From Hyaloraphidium curvatum SAG 235-1 (lineage: Eukaryota; Fungi; Monoblepharomycota), in assembly GCA_025558095.1 (NCBI GenBank), contig JAIVFI010000026.1, positions 1 through 64,000 of the forward strand: a DNA stretch of 64,000 nt. The letters run 5' to 3'. How positions within the stretch are numbered: position 1 is the stretch's first letter; each line of letters begins with the position of its first letter. Below, in pieces: positions 172 through 57,941 of the stretch. The notes beneath the pieces were generated by a model. That model was not told where the DNA came from. It saw nothing but the letters and a program-made list of their open reading frames with translations, and searched no databases. The translations under genes and the position numbers were made by a program.

Positions 172-610
172 TTCAGCAGAGATTTCTGTGGAGGACCTGC
201 TCGCTCCCAGTGCCGTCCTGCCGCAGCCAGCCAGCCAGCCACCGAGTCAACGGCATCCCCTCCCCACCGCCCCCGGGACCACCAATCCGCCCGGACACCA
301 CTGCAGCGCTTCCGAACGAGGCCAATCCACCATTCCCGAAACGGGACAAGCACAGATCGGTGTCTTCGGCGCTTGACTGACTGACTTCGTGCGGGCACCA
401 GCCCAGCCTTCCCGTGCTTCCGCGCAAGGAGGCCCGACACCGCCCGCGTCGCTCATCCGGATTGCATTCCCGCGGCCTCCCATCGCCGCAATCGGCCTCC
501 GCCGCCCGCTGCCGCCCCTCTGCCGGCGGACCCGCGCGGAAGAGGTTGGTCGGGACGCGCCTGGCTTTGCGTCCTGCGGCACGCACCGCCGCACCGCACG
601 CACTTCGGGC

Positions 611-1724
611 ATGCGGGGACGGAGGCGCGCCCGGGGCCGGCGGCGCGGGGATGCGCGTGCGCCGGCGGATCGCGCGGGCGATGCGGCGCGGGAAGGGCGC
701 GGGAGGGCGGCGCCGGGGGCACGCGACGCGGGCGCGGGCGGGCGCTCTCGGGGCGTCTGCGGAGGGCTGCACCGGACCACGGCGCTGCTCCTGCTCCTCC
801 TATTGCTTGGGCAACTATTGGGAACCGCGATGGCCGCGGCGGGGCCCGCGGTGGCCGGGGAGGGCGCCGTCAGTGTGCCCGACACCTCGGACGCCGTGCT
901 CCCCCCGGACGCACACCGCCTGGAGCGACGGCAGGCGGTCAAGACCATCACCCGCTTCAAGACCGTCAAGGTCACGCGGACCTCGTGGCGAACAGCGTGG
1001 ACCACTAAGCGCACGACTCGCACAGCGACCACGTTTGTGACGCGCTATCTGACCCGGAAGACCTCGACGAAATGGCTCACAAAGACGGCCTGGAAGACGC
1101 TGCCAACCACCACAACGTCGACCTCGGTCTCGCTGGTCTTCACAACCCAGACGCTGTCGACCACCCAGACGCTAACGGCGACGACCACCACGACCCTCGT
1201 TGCGCTGGCGGCCAACATCGGCGGGCCGTGGGCGCCCGTATGCTCCTCCTTCCAGGCCAACGGGCGCTCCTGCATCGGTGGGCCGCACCGCCGTGCCTCG
1301 CGGCCTCCGGCTCGCTGACGCCTCCCCCGACGTCGCAGACCTCGTCCCCTGCCTCGCCGCCTCCTCCGCGGCCTCCATCTCCCTTCCTCCCCTCACGCTC
1401 GACCTCTCCTCCTCCTCCGTCTCGCTGCTGCAGATCAACCTCCTCCCCCGCACCGCCCGCCCCGCCCAGATTATCATCGACTCGCTCCTCTCCCGCACCT
1501 CGGGCACCGCCCTGCTCTATTCCGACTTTGACGGCAACGCCCGATGGAGCCTCCCGCTGGAGGGCGGCATCCCCACGGCATGGGGCCGCAACGCGACGGC
1601 GAGCTTCGGGAGGTTCCTGGGGCTGACGATGGCGGCGCCCGGGGCGCCGAAGCGGGCGGGGTGGATCGTGGAGCACCAGGGCGGGGCGCTGGTGTGGCAG
1701 AGCATCATCGTGTGCGTCGCCTGA
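611..1724 (+). CDS. Putative secreted/surface protein with Thr/Lys/Arg-rich linker, one intron (~1278-1338)
   Basis: Hydrophobic LLLLLLLGQLLGTAMA segment, T-rich tract, GT...ctgac...CAG intron joining SCI to DLVPCL; start uncertain. Confidence 0.6.
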
Positions 1725-1983: not shown

Positions 1984-2071
1984 CGGCCGCGGGGCACGCA
2001 CCGTCCGCCGCCCGCCCCCGGGCGTGATGCGCCCGGTTTCCGGCGGGGGCATCATCGCGGCCCCGCGGCCG
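1984..2071 (-). promoter_or_regulatory. SECIS element (type II) in the 3' UTR of the 2922-2112 gene
   Basis: Minus strand: helix I cggccgcgggg/ccccgcggccg; AUGA (2055-2052) ... GA (2005-2004) core; helix II gcccccgcc/ggcggg(c)ggc; unpaired AAA (2039-2037) 12 nt after AUGA; apical mini-helix ccgggcg/cgcccgg. Confidence 0.85.
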
Positions 2072-2111: not shown

Positions 2112-2922
2112 CTAGCACGCCTTGGCGAGCCGCCGCATGAGGGGCATGAAGACGCCGTCGAGCGGGGCGTGGTCGCCAAAGACGGATTCGCTGCGTCCGG
2201 TGTGTCAAAAATCCACCTCCCGTGGCTCCGTCGTGCGCGATACCCACAGGTGCCCGTACTCCAGCTTCCCATCCTTCGAAACGACCATCGCCCCGCCCGC
2301 GATCATCTCCCCCGACTCGGGCTCCCCGCCGTGCTCCGCGACCGCGTAGCGCTGGTGCGCCGACGCGAGAACGTCGCAGTCCGGGGCCGGGATGCCGGTG
2401 GCGGGTGATCCGCCGGCCAAGGCCGCGAAGAAGGCTGTAACGGGCCTAATGAGCGCGGATAGGGGGTTGCGAGGAGAAAAACGTACCGAGTTCCCGGTCG
2501 ACGAGGACGTCGCCCTTCCAGACGTCCGCAGCCAGCTCGGCGGCGCCCTCGTGGCCGCGGACCATGAGTACCAGACGAAACCCGAGCGCTTCGATCTCCT
2601 CGCGGCGTGCGGCCTGCCCAAGGAGGACGGGTCAGCGACAGCACCTTGCCGCGACGAGCCGACGGAACCCACCCAGAGCCCCGCCTCCTCCCTGCACAGC
2701 GCCTTCCTGCTCCTCCCGTCAGCCCCACTCTCTCCAAAGCACGCGGGCTCCCCACCTCGCGTCCCGCAGCACGAGCACCGCCGCGCCCCTGCCTCCCCGC
2801 CACAGCTCCCCCGCAGACACCTCTGCCCCGCCCGCCGCGGGGGCCAGCGCCGCGTCGCCGCGGGGAGCGACGCCGGAGGAGGCCACGGGCGGGCGGAGGA
2901 GGTGCGTCGGGACTCAGACCAT
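2112..2922 (-). CDS. Peroxiredoxin-like 2 / SelenoU-like (AhpC-TSA_2) protein, candidate selenoprotein with UGA at codon 3; 197 aa, 5 exons
   Basis: Exons 2922-2756, 2706-2673, 2613-2487, 2434-2248, 2190-2112 (all GT-AG) give MV*VPTHLL...ELWRGGRGAAVLVLRDARKALCREEA...WKGDVLVD...GEMIAGGAMVV...HLESVFGDHA; family motifs ELW, LCREEA, GG..VV, E..FGDH; SECIS downstream. Confidence 0.8.
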
Positions 2923-3203
2923 CGTTTTTCGGGGTGGGTCGGATGTGGGAGATGCGGGGTGGATTTGTCAGCGATCGTCTGCCAGGGCGGCAGGGCGCGG
3001 CGCGGCTCGGCCGTCAACCAAGGCGCGGAGCTCGGATCGCAGCGAATCCTTCTCGGTGAGATAACGTATGTGCTTCATCAACCTCTTCCTTAATGGATCC
3101 GGGCCTGGTTTGGGCTCTGGGTGCCGCCACCGCCGCGGCGCAACCCCGAAACTGCCGACGTCTCCCACACCGCACTTCACTCCCGCCCCCGCAGCCCGCC
3201 GAC

Positions 3204-3609
3204 ATGCCCATCCTCACCATCGCCACCCTCACCGCAAAGCCCGAGCGCCTTGCAGAGGTGCTGCCCATCATGAACGACCTCGTCGTCGAGACGAACAAGG
3301 TCCGTCTCCTCGTTCGGCCCACCGCCGACGCTTCACCGCCACCCCTGGGGGCAGGAACCCGGCTGCATCGAGTACGAATACTACTTAAATCCTAAAAAAC
3401 CGGGAGAAATCGTATTCATCGAGCAGTGGCAGGACGAGGCCGCGGTGGAGTTCCACCGGGCCTCGCCGCACATGCAGGCCGTAAACGCCAAGCTAAAGGG
3501 CAAAATGGTGGGCCGACGCCGGTGAGGGGCCTGGGAACCGTTCTTGCTGATGCAGAGGCAGGCCAAGGCGGTGGTCGGAAGGAGGATGGTTATCCCCAGC
3601 AAGCTTTGA
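3204..3609 (+). CDS. Antibiotic biosynthesis monooxygenase (ABM)/quinol monooxygenase-like protein, 2 introns, C-terminal SKL
   Basis: MPILTIATLTAKPE...EPGCIEYEYY...FIEQWQDEAAVEFHRASPHM; spliced end ...VIPSKL*. Confidence 0.85.
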
Positions 3610-12187: not shown

Positions 12188-14276
12188 ATGCTCGACGTCG
12201 GCACCCTCGCCGCCGCCGGCGCCCTGGCGCTGGTCGCCGGCGCCGTCTACCTGCTGATCAAGGTGCGCCGCCGCACCGCTGCTCCTTGCCCCCGTTCTGA
12301 ACGGCCCGCAGTACCCGAACCGCGCGGCCTTCACCCCCGAAATGCCCGGCGTCCCCCTGGTGGACAACTCGCTGCCCCTGCTCGGCCACGCCTTCGAGCT
12401 CGCGAGGACGGCGCCGTACATGCACGAGTGGTACCTCGAGCTCGCAAAGAAGCACGGCGTGGGTCGTTGAACGGCGGCGGAACGGCCGGGGCGCCGGCTC
12501 ACGGCTACGGTTCGCCCAGGACGTGTTCCGGACGACCATGTGGCTCCCCGGCATGGCGCACGCGGACATGGTGACCACTCTCAACGTCAAGGACGTCGAA
12601 GGTCGGCTTCTCCGCCCCCCCTGGCCGAACTGGCCTGATCCGCGCACCCGAAAGCCATCCTCAGGGACCCGTACCTCTTCGAGAAGGGCGACGGCATGCG
12701 CGACATGAACCAGGACCTGTTCGGCCACGGCATCTTTGCGACGGACGGGGACCTGTGGAAGGTGCAGCGCAAGGTGGCCTCGAACATCTTCAACGTGCGC
12801 AACTTTAGGTGCGGATCCCGGAAACGTCTCCCCTCCTGCGTGCGCGTCCCGCTTACCTCGACCCCGCGCGGCTTGCAGGGACCTCTACGCGCCCATCTTC
12901 GTCGAGGACTCGACCAACCTCCGCCGCCACCTCTCGATCGTCGCCGACCACTGTAAATCGCATCCCGACGCCTGCGTGGACATCCAGGACCTCCTCCTCC
13001 GCTCGACCATGGACTCGTTCGTCAAGCTGAGCATGGGCGGGCAGCTGGGCAACCTCGCCGGCGAGGGCACGTTCGATGCCGAGGGGAGGTACCGGCTGCA
13101 CGAGATACCCTTCGCCAAGGCGTTCGACCTGCTCAACTCGCACGTGACAAAGCGGTTCCAGAACCCGCTGTGGAAGATCACCGAGAGGCTGGATGGCACG
13201 CACGCGCAGATGAGGTCGTACCAGAAGACGCTGGACGACTTTACGCTGTCGATCGTGCGGAGGAAGCGCGCCGAGAGGGAGAAGGACGCGTCCAAGGGGA
13301 GCAAGGAATCCGGCGGCGATTTGCTCGATTATTTCTTGAACGTCAAGGTGGATATCTCGCGTTCCGCCGCCATCATGTGCTCACGCGTGCCGCAGAACGA
13401 GGACGGGACGGACATCTCCGACAGGCAGCTCCAGGACACGGTCCGCAACATGATCGTCGCCGGTTCGTCCCCCGCATCCTTCCGCTCCTCCGCCCCGCTT
13501 TTTTGACGCCCGCCCCGCGATCCGCGCAGGCCGCGACACCACCGCGCAGACCATGTCCTGGGTCGTCTACACCCTCTCGCAGCGCCCCGACGTGGCCGAC
13601 AAGGTCCGCGCCGAGATGGACGCCGTCATCGGGCCCGACAAGGACAAGCTGCCGGACTACTCGCACTTCAACGGGCTCAAGTACTCGATGGCCGTGTTCA
13701 ACGAGGTTCTGCGGCTCCACAGCAACGTCCGTGGGTATCCCCCTCCCGTGCGCCCCTTGCGTCCGACGAAGCAGCTGACATCCCGCGGCCAGCGTTCAAC
13801 TTCAAGCACCCCACCCAGGACACCGTCCTCCCCGGCTCCGGCACCAAGGTCTTTGCCGGGCAGCGCGTGCAGTTCGTCACCTTCGCCATGGGCCGGTACG
13901 ACAAGATCTGGGGGCCCGACGCCGAGGAGTTCAAGCCCGAGAGGTGGCTGGACGAGAAGGGGTCGCTGCGGAAGGAGGATTCGTACAAGTACCCGGTTTT
14001 CAACGCGTGGGTTTGCCCGTCCCTTGGGCCCGCGCGCGTTCACAGGTTGACGGCCGCCCGTACCGCAGAGGCCCGCGCATCTGCCTCGGCATGGACCTCG
14101 CCCGCCAGGAGGCCATGGTGCTCATGGCCGCCATCTTCCGGCGCTTCCGGCTCACCGTGGTGCGCGAGGACGACCCGGAGAAGTACGGAGACCCCGCGGG
14201 GAAGAGGGGGAGGTACGACCTGCAGGTCACGCTGGCGGTGCGCAAGTCGCTGGACGTCAAGGTCGAGGCGATCTGA
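12188..14276 (+). CDS. Cytochrome P450 (fatty-acid/alkane hydroxylase-like), multi-intron
   Basis: GIFATDGDLWKVQRK, AGRDTTA (spliced), EVLRLH, FKPERW, FNAGPRICLG heme motif. Confidence 0.95.
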
Positions 14277-14887
14277 GCATCGGCGGTTCGGTGGCGATCG
14301 GGGCACCGTCGCTTCGGAAGCTGCTTTTTGGCCTTTGGATCGGGTTGCTCGAGTGCGAACCTTTGTAGCAACGTGCGGAGTAAAACAATCGTTGGGATTG
14401 ATCTTGCCCAATGGCCGTTCTTTTCTGGGCTTGATCCGCCGCATCGTGGAAGTGAGTCGCCAACAACGTCGGCGAGTCGACTCGCCTCCACCTCGAGGCG
14501 ACTCGGCCAATCAACCCCAGCTCCTTGTCCACCGACGACGATGGCGCTGCCTCCGCGCGTTGCCTCTACGGTCGTCTGGACCCGGCCCTCTTTCCGGGCC
14601 ACGGTGGGCGCCTTCATGCTGGGCAACGCGTTCGGCAATTTCGCGTTGGTCGGAGGGTTCCTTCTGGTCTTGCTCCGCCTTTGCTAGATCCCGTCCTCTG
14701 ACCTGCTCGTGCTCGTGGCAATCTACTACGTTCATGTGTTTCTGCCGCGCGCCCCAATCACCGGCTGGGCCACGCGAGGCAGCACCCGCGCCATGGATCC
14801 GAACGACGTCTCCCTGTACTTCGACCTCCGAGCCCTGACGATCGACCCTCCCGGCGAAACCGAAATTGTCGCCGGAAGGAGCTACAT

Positions 14888-16209
14888 GTAAATGTAATAT
14901 AACCTCTCTTACGATGGTAGATATGCTATCTACCCTCTCTCTTTTAGGTGTTCATAAGACTCCTGTAGAGATTACGGTACTCCCCTTTCAGTTAACCCAA
15001 CTCCAGCTTCACCTTGTGCTGGTGTCCCTTCTCTTCATTAGCTTAGTGAGTGCGTAAATTGGGAATTATCTCCACAGTGAGCTGGGTTGGCCTTCTTGGA
15101 CTTCTACTACCCTCTCTGGAATCATGCTTATACTATCCTTTTTGGTACGTTGGCCATGATGACTCTAGGGGCTCATGTGATTACCTGTTCCTTTCTAGGA
15201 CTTTACCATTGGTTAACACGTCTTTTATGGTGATTAGCTGTTATCTTCGCTGTAATAAGTCTAACTTTGGCTCTTCCACGTCATGTGGTGCATGCCGACG
15301 AGCCGAAAGGCAAGGAGCATGCCCCCACTCCGGAACCCGAACCCGAATCGGAACCGGAATCGGACGATGAATTTTATGCTTATTACAATGAGGGTTCTTC
15401 TAATCCCCGTATGCCTCAGACCGTTACGGTGCGCCCACCTTCTCCTGGCCTCAATACCAATCCTGAGTCTTCTTCTCGCACGAAATATAATTCTCAGGCC
15501 GGTGTTGATGATTGGGATAATCGCATCGTTAACGTATTACACCCGGCGTTTCGTGAAGCGGACGAGAAACATAAAAAAGTTTCTCGTCACCTTCGTCGAG
15601 CTCGTCGTGAGGGAGGGTCCGAGGCTGTTATCAAATTGGCCAGTCAAGTTGCGATTGGCAAATGGTGGAAGTTGAGTAAGAAAGTTTATAAGGCTGAGCG
15701 CGACCTTCATTCTGAAGATGGTGACGCTCATAACTTGACTCAATCTTATCGCAACGACTTCCTTGATAACTACTTGGATAGTTTTGCAGCCTCTGGGGTT
15801 CTCACTAAAGATGAGTCTATCAAGGCTGCTGCTATTGCTCTCTCTTATATTTTAGACCAAAATAACAATCAATAGTCTGATAAGTTTATCATGGTTTGAT
15901 TAGAGTCTCATCTTCATTAGCTCCCCTTGTTACTTTACTTTCAACTTTCCCCTCACTACAAAAAATTACTTTATTATTTGATGGTTGCTACCATTTATGC
16001 CGATATGCCTTTACCCTGGGCTATTGGATTTCAGGACATTGGAAGCCCTACCTTCTATGGTCTTGTAGAACTACACGATCACATCCTCTTTTATCTGGTC
16101 GTCATTTTGGTACTGGTATCTTGGTTCCTTATTCGCGGAATGCTTATGAACAACGCCATTGTTTATACTCACCACTTCCATGGGCACCTCATTGAGTTTC
16201 TCTGGACCT
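14888..16209. other. Nuclear insertion of mitochondrial DNA (NUMT)
   Basis: Abrupt AT-rich block containing the cox2 5' end; flanked by TACAT at 14883-14887 and 16210-16214. Confidence 0.9.
15267..15875 (+). other. Unidentified mitochondrial-type ORF within the NUMT
   Basis: 202-codon open frame in AT-rich DNA with PEPEPESEPE tract; may extend to ATG 15156 if TGA 15231 is Trp. Confidence 0.45.
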
Positions 16210-17071: not shown

Positions 17072-17600
17072 CTATCCCGCGACGTCCGAGCCATCGTCGG
17101 ACTCCACCGGCATCTCCTCCATCGGGTGCGCCGGCCCCGATTCATCGCCAGGCTCCGACACCCGGTCATCCTCGTCGGTCGCGTGGGCGCTCCCGTCCAG
17201 CTCCTCGTCCCCCGGCACCCCCCCTTCGGCCCCGCCAAACCAGCCGACCTCATCCATCCACGCCGCCACGGACTCGGTGTCCCACTCGAGCCCCTCGCCG
17301 GGGACATGCCCCTCGTACCGCTGCGCCTCGCTCTGCACGCCGGCCCTGCGCAGGCGCCGCCGCGCCCGCTTCCCGCCCGCGAACGGCGAGTGGAACACTT
17401 CGGCCAGGGACGTCATCGCCGAGGCAAAGTGGGAGAGCTGCGCGGGGCTTAAGGTGGCGTCGATCACGTCGAGGGTGCGGAGGTTGCGCAGCCGCGCTAC
17501 GGCGGCCAGGGACTCGGTGTCGAGCTCGACGGCGCAGAGGTAGAGGGACAACAGGGCTGGCAGGTTTGCGACGGCTCGTGGGTCGACGTCGTCTTTCGCC
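17072..17600 (-). pseudogene. Startless LRR-like gene remnant
   Basis: LPALLSLYL, LRNLRTLDV repeats and acidic tail; no ATG between the Sec1 stop and the LRR repeats. Confidence 0.4.
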
Positions 17601-56598: not shown

Positions 56599-56671
56599 AG
56601 GGACTACCCAGGATCGAACCGGGGACCTCGCGATTTGCAATCGCACGCTCTAAGCCACTGAGCTATAGCCC
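56599..56671 (-). tRNA. tRNA-Cys(GCA), intronless
   Basis: gggctatagctcagtgg...tgcga-ttGCAaa-tcgcg...ggttcgatcc...tagtccct cloverleaf. Confidence 0.95.
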
Positions 56672-57941
56672 AAAGTCTATGCTTAAGAGTATAGTGGTCT
56701 TACTGACCGCAAGCATTTGCCAGTCCAGCGGGCGGTCCCGGGCCATGCAGCCAACACCAGTGGTTCACCCCTTTGGCGCCTTCCTGCCTCGGCTCCGGGC
56801 CTGGCTGCCCGAGTCGGGCTGTCACGGCGGGGTGGTGCAGGCCTGGAGTTGCTTCCACCCAATCAACGTGCGCGGGGCGAGGCTCGGCATCTGCGGTTGT
56901 CGCAGCCCCTCGACCGCTCCAGGCGCACCGATCCAGTCTCCATGGTTGACGGCCCCGAGAGCCGCCCGGAGCAGTCTCGGAGCCATCTCGACCGACCTGC
57001 GGGGGCGGCGACGATCGGCCTTCTTCGGGCCCTCATTGCTCGCCAGAATCCCTACCTCCGGGGCGTGGCAACGGACCGTTTTTTTTTCATAGTCCTCTTT
57101 GCCCCAGCACTGATGCGGCAATGCCGAATCGCCCGCCGGTCGAGAAAAGCCGAGATGCGACGGCGCCAGCGATTTGCCAGCATGCGAGAAATTGCCGCAA
57201 TGGTGCAATGGATTTGGCTGGCCACGGAGCACCCAGGGAGGCGGATAAGTGCTTAAAGGGACAGCCGGTACGGAAGCCCACGGATTGCACCCTGCTAGGG
57301 CTGAGATGAAAGCACGCGGACAGCTAAGCGTGATCTCCTACTCCTAGCTATAGTGTGGCATCCGGCCGTCCAGTTGGCAGAGCAGTGACTGGACTGAACC
57401 TGGAGGTGAGTCCCTTCGCCCAAAGTCAAACGGCCGCCCTCAGGCGAACATGCGCGCGATCCCGCCCTCCGTCGTGGACAAAGATTGCCGATGACGACGC
57501 CACCCGAGGCTCCGGGCTGCAGTCCACAAGATGACTCTGCGGGCCACAGTGACCGTCGCGCGGGAACCTTCCCGATTTCCGAAACGCATGGGCCGCCGTC
57601 CGCGGCAGCACATCGCGGGGTCTAATCGGCACAAGCAAGCGAAGGACACTGCGGATCCCGAGCTGGAAGATGTACACAAGGATCAGTCGTCTGGATGAAA
57701 TGTTGACCTATTCACGCAAGGGGCCCCTTGCCCGATGATGTCCCGCCGTCCGACCTCAGGTACGGCGGGCAGAGCAAACGACGGCCATCAAGCCCCTCCT
57801 CTGTCCGTCGCTGGCGTCCCCGGCGCGTTGCTTGCCGAACACGCGGTCCACCTCGCTATCCGGCAACCTCCCGGCAATGACCCACTGGCGACCAACGTCC
57901 GTGCGCACGCAGCGTCCCGGGTCCCGCTAAAGAGCATTCCT

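Follow-up and report, generated by a model that had tools for sequence, protein, structure and literature searches.

A very probable form 2 SECIS element behind a PRXL2-like gene whose third codon is an in-frame UGA, in the early-branching fungus Hyaloraphidium curvatum

The carrier gene and its transcript

The window analyzed herein is a stretch of 64,000 nucleotides of the genome of Hyaloraphidium curvatum SAG 235-1 (assembly GCA_025558095.1, contig JAIVFI010000026.1, positions 1 to 64,000), and near its beginning lies an 88-nt hairpin on the minus strand (1984-2071, read from 2071 to 1984) which, by sequence reading and folding, has the features of a form 2 SECIS. It follows a gene of five exons on the same strand, whose coding sequence (2922-2756, 2706-2673, 2613-2487, 2434-2248, and 2190-2112) amounts to 594 nt. 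Exon 1 (2756-2922) begins with ATG GTC TGA GTC and was defined by its translation and by an RNA contig that is unbroken over 2755-3297; exon 2 (2673-2706), defined by RNA joints and translation, encodes K-A-L-C-R-E-E-A at the usual U/CxxC site. RNA joints also delimit exon 3 (2487-2613), which gives a match to PF13911 below the cut-off of 27 (13.5 bits, E 0.096), exon 4 (2248-2434), and exon 5 (2112-2190, joint 2190|2248), which ends with the stop codon TAG at 2114-2112. The introns are short and of the GT..CTGAC..AG type, which would suit a fungus, as would the genome size of 32 Mb.

Transcript evidence came from a public run, to all appearances a transcriptome assembly, which supplied one contig, aligned in blocks at 1338-2190, 2248-2434, 2487-2612, 2672-2705, 2755-3297, and 3353-3500 with zero letters differing from the window. 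Four of its joints are exactly the predicted minus-strand GT..AG introns, and the same contig carries the four splices, the TGA of codon 3, and the hairpin together. It also extends into both neighboring genes and is therefore no proof of a single transcript, nor of polyadenylation past the hairpin. On one side it confirms a plus-strand GT..AG intron (3298-3352) of a divergent neighbor, a small gene starting at about 3200; on the other, a convergent plus-strand gene stops at 1722-1724, which places the hairpin in a gap of about 390 nt between convergent stops. That a single assembled contig crosses three genes located on both strands points to transcripts that overlap or to an assembly without strand information. 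The earlier note had located the hairpin inside the 3' UTR, where it would probably lie, the RNA contig covering it 40 nt past the stop but also continuing through the neighbors.

Comparison of the carrier protein with known families, carried out exon by exon, points to the SelenoU/PRXL2 group (PF13911, AhpC-TSA_2), which it resembles in the C-R-E-E-A and F-G-D-H-A-P-L motifs and in the weak similarity to PF13911. The stretch K-A-L-C-R-E-E-A of exon 2 is the counterpart of the U/CxxC-R-E-E-A site that a canonical SelenoU found on contig 27 of the same genome also has, and exon 5 matches the segment E-x-x-F-G-D-H-A-P-L-E/D-G of a PRXL2-like gene of contig 20 (E 3e-6). Unlike SelenoU/PRXL2 proteins, the carrier has K-A-L-C at this site, with Lys in the usual Sec position of UxxC and thus neither Sec nor Cys at the first U/CxxC position of PF13911, and its sole UGA is at codon 3.

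Structure of the hairpin and its distinction from background

Read on the minus strand, the hairpin combines the AUGA/GA quartet, a helix II within the range of about 9-12 bp, an unpaired AA(R) with a mini-helix, and the helix I that characterize form 2 eukaryotic SECIS elements, so that all the type II features described in the earlier note are present with canonical spacing, according to both sequence and fold. The element as a whole (1984-2071) is supported by folding, by the alignment to Rfam SECIS_1, and by a descriptor match. In helix I the 5' strand (2060-2071) pairs with the 3' strand (1984-1995) through 12 bp, all of them G-C (the 11 bp previously counted, plus the closing pair), and four further pairs (2059-2056 with 2000-1997) prolong it as far as the core. 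Within the core, both A of the AUGA (2052-2055) are unpaired (probability 0.97-1.0), as is the 3' GA (2004-2005; 0.98-1.0), while the U and G can be opened at 0.2 kcal/mol, the whole cost of forcing the AUGA/GA core open being only +0.2 kcal/mol. Helix II is formed by 10 bp between 2042-2051 and 2006-2016, with one bulged C, and in the alignment to the species-specific covariance model R2, described below, 9/9 modelled pairs are standard. The AAA (2037-2039; unpaired probability 1.0) starts exactly 12 nt after the AUGA, as had been claimed, a spacing also found in 6/9 other SECIS elements of the H. curvatum genome, and it is followed by an apical mini-helix of 7 bp (2036-2030 with 2024-2018) closed by a 5-nt loop, which together span 2018-2036. 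From the stop codon there are 40 nt to the hairpin, the distance given in the earlier note, and 56 nt to the SECIS core.

These features, together with the 10-bp helix II and the 3' location, are those of the form 2 elements of RF00031, and in motifs and spacing the hairpin also agrees with nine other SECIS elements of the genome. In comparison with RF00031, helix I is unusually long (12 + 4 bp) and abuts the core, and for that reason only a minimal internal loop is left, with 0-1 nt in its 5' part and 3 nt in its 3' part. In comparison with the other SECIS elements of the genome, the apical part is longer, with 31 nt from AAA to GA against 19-26.

Because the window is rich in G+C (65-77%), stable hairpins come cheap in it. 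The genome, of 32 Mb, has 68-70% G+C, and the window has 62-77% outside one island of 53% G+C at 14001-16000. The minimum free energy of the hairpin is -70.6 kcal/mol, against -53.7 +/- 3.9 kcal/mol in dinucleotide shuffles (z -4.35), and none of the 200 shuffles was as good; the plus strand, as is to be expected of a hairpin, folds about equally well (-68 kcal/mol), with the SECIS motifs absent there.

The hairpin was also tested with a descriptor of motifs and helices. The first, stricter descriptor matched the SECIS hairpin alone but missed every known SECIS element, and was consequently loosened. The loosened version requires ATGA and, after 10-13 nt, AA; a helix II that ends at this AA and has 8 or more pairs, with no more than one defect; GA on the 3' side; and a helix I with 4 or more pairs lying within 8 nt. 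In the real window this descriptor has two matches, namely the SECIS hairpin (helix II of 10 bp, helix I of 12 bp) and a second, weak match at 17416-17371, with helices of 8 and 5 bp. The latter, SECIS-like on the minus strand (17371-17416) with AAG replacing AAA, is at chance level. When the window was dinucleotide-shuffled 300 times, the descriptor found 0.63 matches per 128 kb. Five matches reached helices of 10 and 6 bp, whereas 0/300 shuffled windows contained one with 10 or more pairs in helix II and 8 or more in helix I. Applied to 228 kb of other loci of the same genome, it recovered six SECIS elements, with a single additional match that was weak; since it misses four of the ten known elements, it is specific rather than sensitive.

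Covariance models gave weak scores. At the gathering threshold, Rfam reported in the whole window a tRNA alone and no SECIS (an ordinary tRNA gene on the minus strand, 56599-56672, 50.3 bits, with anticodon loop GCA for Cys), and a search at E<=10 on 501 nt around the hairpin also gave no SECIS match. On 161 nt, SECIS_1 (RF00031) was the sole family, on the minus strand only, at 1991-2064 over model positions 1-64, with an alignment that includes helix I, AUGA, helix II, AAA, the mini-helix, and GA. A model search of the kind proposed in the earlier note thus yields a full-length match on the expected strand, but with a score of 13.9 bits (E 4.8 in 161 nt; bias 9.2), which is below the curated threshold of 35. 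This cut-off is uninformative in the genome of H. curvatum, because control SECIS elements of its own fail it too: the one behind the SPS gene scores 18.3 bits and that of contig 37 13.0 bits, and that of the canonical SelenoU has no match. The 18.3 bits of the SPS element in particular indicate that the general Rfam model is insensitive in a G+C-rich genome.

Species-specific covariance models were built, R1 from two SECIS elements and R2 from seven others and restricted to the core and helix II; the register of helix I differs in each SECIS element, and MAFFT placed gaps inside helix II. R2 gave the hairpin 12.2 bits, with an E of 0.0054 in the 301-nt 3' region and of 1.2 (rank 8) in the whole window. 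It is a weak model, under which the true, held-out SECIS elements of contigs 27 and 37 score 11.6 and 12.3 bits and the top of the window background 14.6 bits. R2 also revealed one further SECIS, on contig 29 (21.4 bits).

Selenocysteine use in the H. curvatum genome

The genome of H. curvatum uses selenocysteine. From the hairpin, the earlier note had predicted a set of Sec genes, most of which could be located. A tRNA-Sec is present on contig 14 (RF01852, 78.2 bits), where ARAGORN also calls tRNA-SeC(tca); SepSecS was found on contig 8 with 199 bits, answering the expectation of a SecS; and the predicted SPS corresponds to a selD model match on contig 2 with an in-frame TGA. For eEFSec, the fourth domain (PF21131) scores above the Pfam cut-off on contig 1 and gave no match in 14 control genomes. 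The anticipated PSTK has a candidate in a PSTK-like P-loop kinase on contig 2, for both exons of which the two PSTK models are the best NCBIfam matches, but the scores are sub-threshold because the queries are fragments. Other routes to these last two genes led elsewhere: the bacterial selB model, used for eEFSec, had the mitochondrial IF-2 as its best match, followed by ordinary translation GTPases, and PF08433, used for PSTK, matched a single locus of the KTI12 family on contig 22, taken as KTI12, and did not match the PSTK-like gene of contig 2.

Genome-wide, RF00031 identified five SECIS elements (21.6-36.2 bits), and further ones were recognized by eye or by pattern behind the SPS gene (contig 2, 989966-993439, locus 598-665, minus strand), behind the SelenoU of contig 27, and behind the PRXL2-like genes of contigs 20 and 29. 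The SelenoU-type gene of contig 27 (500628-503852, minus strand) encodes V-I-R-R-P-G and, after an intron, U-W-F-C-R-E-E-A (G-U-W-F-C), and past its stop there is a SECIS with AUGA..AAA..UGA that Rfam SECIS_1 leaves undetected. The element of contig 29 (387520-390822, locus 1207-1267, minus strand) is a long form 2 SECIS, with a helix II of 12 bp and a helix I of 11 bp, near the strongest PF13911 match of the genome. On contig 3 (1121810-1124873, plus strand), a SECIS of 32.8 bits comes after an ORF that resembles deiodinases and contains G-S-H-S-U-P-P-F, and on contig 22 (278082-281142, minus strand) a SelH-like ORF with N-S-U-G-T-Y-R-G-R-A-N-K is followed by a form 1-like SECIS of 21.6 bits.

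The use of Sec by early-branching fungi has been published for Gonapodya prolifera and four others (Mariotti et al., 10.1101/314781). The fungal SECIS elements of that study start about 40-420 nt after the stop, with AhpC/SelenoU-type genes among their carriers, and were found for only 5/16 fungal selenoprotein genes in a survey that did not include the H. curvatum genome (10.1101/314781). A later phylogenomic study counts 11 Sec-encoding genomes of early-diverging fungi and has Hyaloraphidium in its taxon set (PMC9457484). The statement in the earlier note that Sec is known only from a few early-diverging fungal lineages is in keeping with these reports, and Hyaloraphidium, a member of the Monoblepharomycota, would fit among them, its relative G. 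prolifera being a published Sec user (10.1101/314781). The hairpin described here resembles the published fungal elements in belonging to an early-branching lineage with eukaryotic Sec machinery, and differs from two AhpC SECIS elements of G. prolifera, which are without apical adenines, in that it has them (10.1101/314781).

The UGA at codon 3 and the possible role of the hairpin

The carrier gene was said in the earlier note to have an in-frame UGA. The mid-frame TGAs (near 2720 and 2630) were considered as possible in-frame codons and rejected, as they lie within CTGAC branch sites and are spliced out with the introns, but the claim holds for the UGA at codon 3 (2914-2916, minus strand), the presumed Sec codon, which remains in the mature mRNA as the sole in-frame TGA of the spliced coding sequence. 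There is an in-frame stop upstream of the ATG, and the next in-frame ATG occurs only in exon 3, past the redox motif, so that codon 3 has to be read through if a complete protein with the thioredoxin fold is to be made. The hairpin itself is ordinary, and the unusual part is the codon that it would serve; to our knowledge, no described selenoprotein has its Sec at codon 3. Two other loci of the genome share this start. In the study of Mariotti et al. (10.1101/314781), a Sec codon at the gene start goes unmentioned and the term 'N-terminal' is absent from the text.

The genome has four copies of the 12-mer ATGGTCTGAGTC and three of a control, a number that by itself is at chance level. Three of its four sites are starts of PRXL2-like genes, namely the window gene and one gene each on contigs 30 and 37; the site on contig 5 was discarded as a gene start for being antisense to another gene. 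In the genes of contigs 30 and 37, the start ATGGTCTGAGTC is followed by V-D-x-x-L-L. The gene of contig 30 (526168-529229, minus strand) begins M-V-U-V-D-P-R-L-L-R-W-P-P, has an intact site C-C-L-C, and has a SECIS core 46 nt past its stop, with the best Rfam SECIS score of the genome (36.2 bits, above the cut-off). That of contig 37 (431460-434471, minus strand, locus 913-1512) is intronless, with 200 codons, a beginning M-V-U-V-D-T-C-L-L, a site C-G-Y-V, and a SECIS core beginning 35 nt after the stop; the nearest Atlas clusters of its protein are AhpC-TSA_2 at 0.95, and a word search with it gave no relative outside the H. curvatum genome. The exons of the window gene are collinear with the contig 37 protein. 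In tblastn searches among the three codon-3 genes the similarity was not significant, and their kinship consequently rests on layout, on a weak common Pfam family, and on short motifs, so that they could be no more than very distant paralogues. With the proteins so diverged, the shared start and SECIS placement are the more telling.

It is likely, in our view, that the hairpin is a working form 2 SECIS that recodes the UGA of codon 3 as selenocysteine via SBP2 and eEFSec. By analogy with known eukaryotic elements, the AUGA/GA core would form a kink-turn-like quartet of non-Watson-Crick pairs, to which SBP2 would bind, recruiting eEFSec with Sec-tRNA(Sec), and this complex would recode codon 3, the sole in-frame UGA, which in the mRNA precedes the hairpin by about 640 nt. 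Met-Val-Sec, followed by Val-Pro-Thr-His, would accordingly be the start of the protein, and the poly(A) site would lie beyond the hairpin.

Three other explanations have to be weighed against this one. The hairpin could be a nonfunctional relic, left behind when a SelenoU-type ancestor lost the Sec of its UxxC site (now K-A-L-C), and ATG-GTC-TGA would then be either coincidental or an upstream ORF of just two codons. In favor of this, Lys stands at the usual Sec position, a canonical SelenoU with G-U-W-F-C persists elsewhere in the genome, and the scores of the SECIS models are weak. Nevertheless, every motif of the hairpin is intact and its fold is very stable; three barely alignable proteins keep an identical 12-nt start with the TGA and a SECIS 35-56 nt past the stop; the peptide just after the UGA is conserved (V-P/D-x-x-L-L); and no alternative in-frame ATG lies ahead of exon 3. 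We regard decay from a former selenoprotein as unlikely.

Even less probable is a hairpin that belongs to the junction between convergent genes, that is, a 3'-end or termination element shared with the plus-strand gene that stops at 1722-1724 and having no Sec role. The position in the gap between the two stops, the equally good fold of the plus strand, and the single RNA contig that crosses both genes would all suit such an element, but the SECIS motifs and the Rfam match are restricted to the minus strand, and the genes of contigs 30 and 37 bear the same motif set in other surroundings. Least credible of all is a G+C-rich palindrome that carries AUGA, AAA, and GA by chance. A genome of 68-70% G+C folds readily, its shuffled sequences already reaching -53.7 kcal/mol, and neither covariance model separates the hairpin from the background in a blind scan; on the other hand, 0/300 shuffled windows contain a structure of equal quality, the hairpin is on the right strand, its distance from the stop is 40 nt, the gene that it follows has an in-frame UGA, and the same arrangement recurs at two other loci. 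Taken as a whole, the evidence makes it very probable that the hairpin is a genuine SECIS, which follows a small gene for a redox enzyme in an early-branching fungus that uses selenium.

The recoding of codon 3 by this SECIS also has a wider, less secure version, towards which we lean: the element would serve the codon-3 UGA as part of a small, lineage-specific PRXL2-like group (contigs 26, 30, and 37) whose proteins start Met-Val-Sec and in which the CxxC motif has become degenerate (KxxC, CxxC, and CxxV). The hairpin is the main support for reading the UGA of codon 3 as selenocysteine, in an unusual position for this residue. A clear canonical SECIS from a fungus matters because fungal SECIS elements are scarce (10.1101/314781), and the hairpin together with about ten other SECIS elements indicates that the signal used by this fungus is the standard one of eukaryotes. 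The set from H. curvatum is material for a fungal SECIS model, an effort made worthwhile by the fact that the general Rfam model misses most of the elements here. If the proposed reading of the codon-3 group is true, the reactive selenium of these proteins would have moved to the extreme N-terminus.
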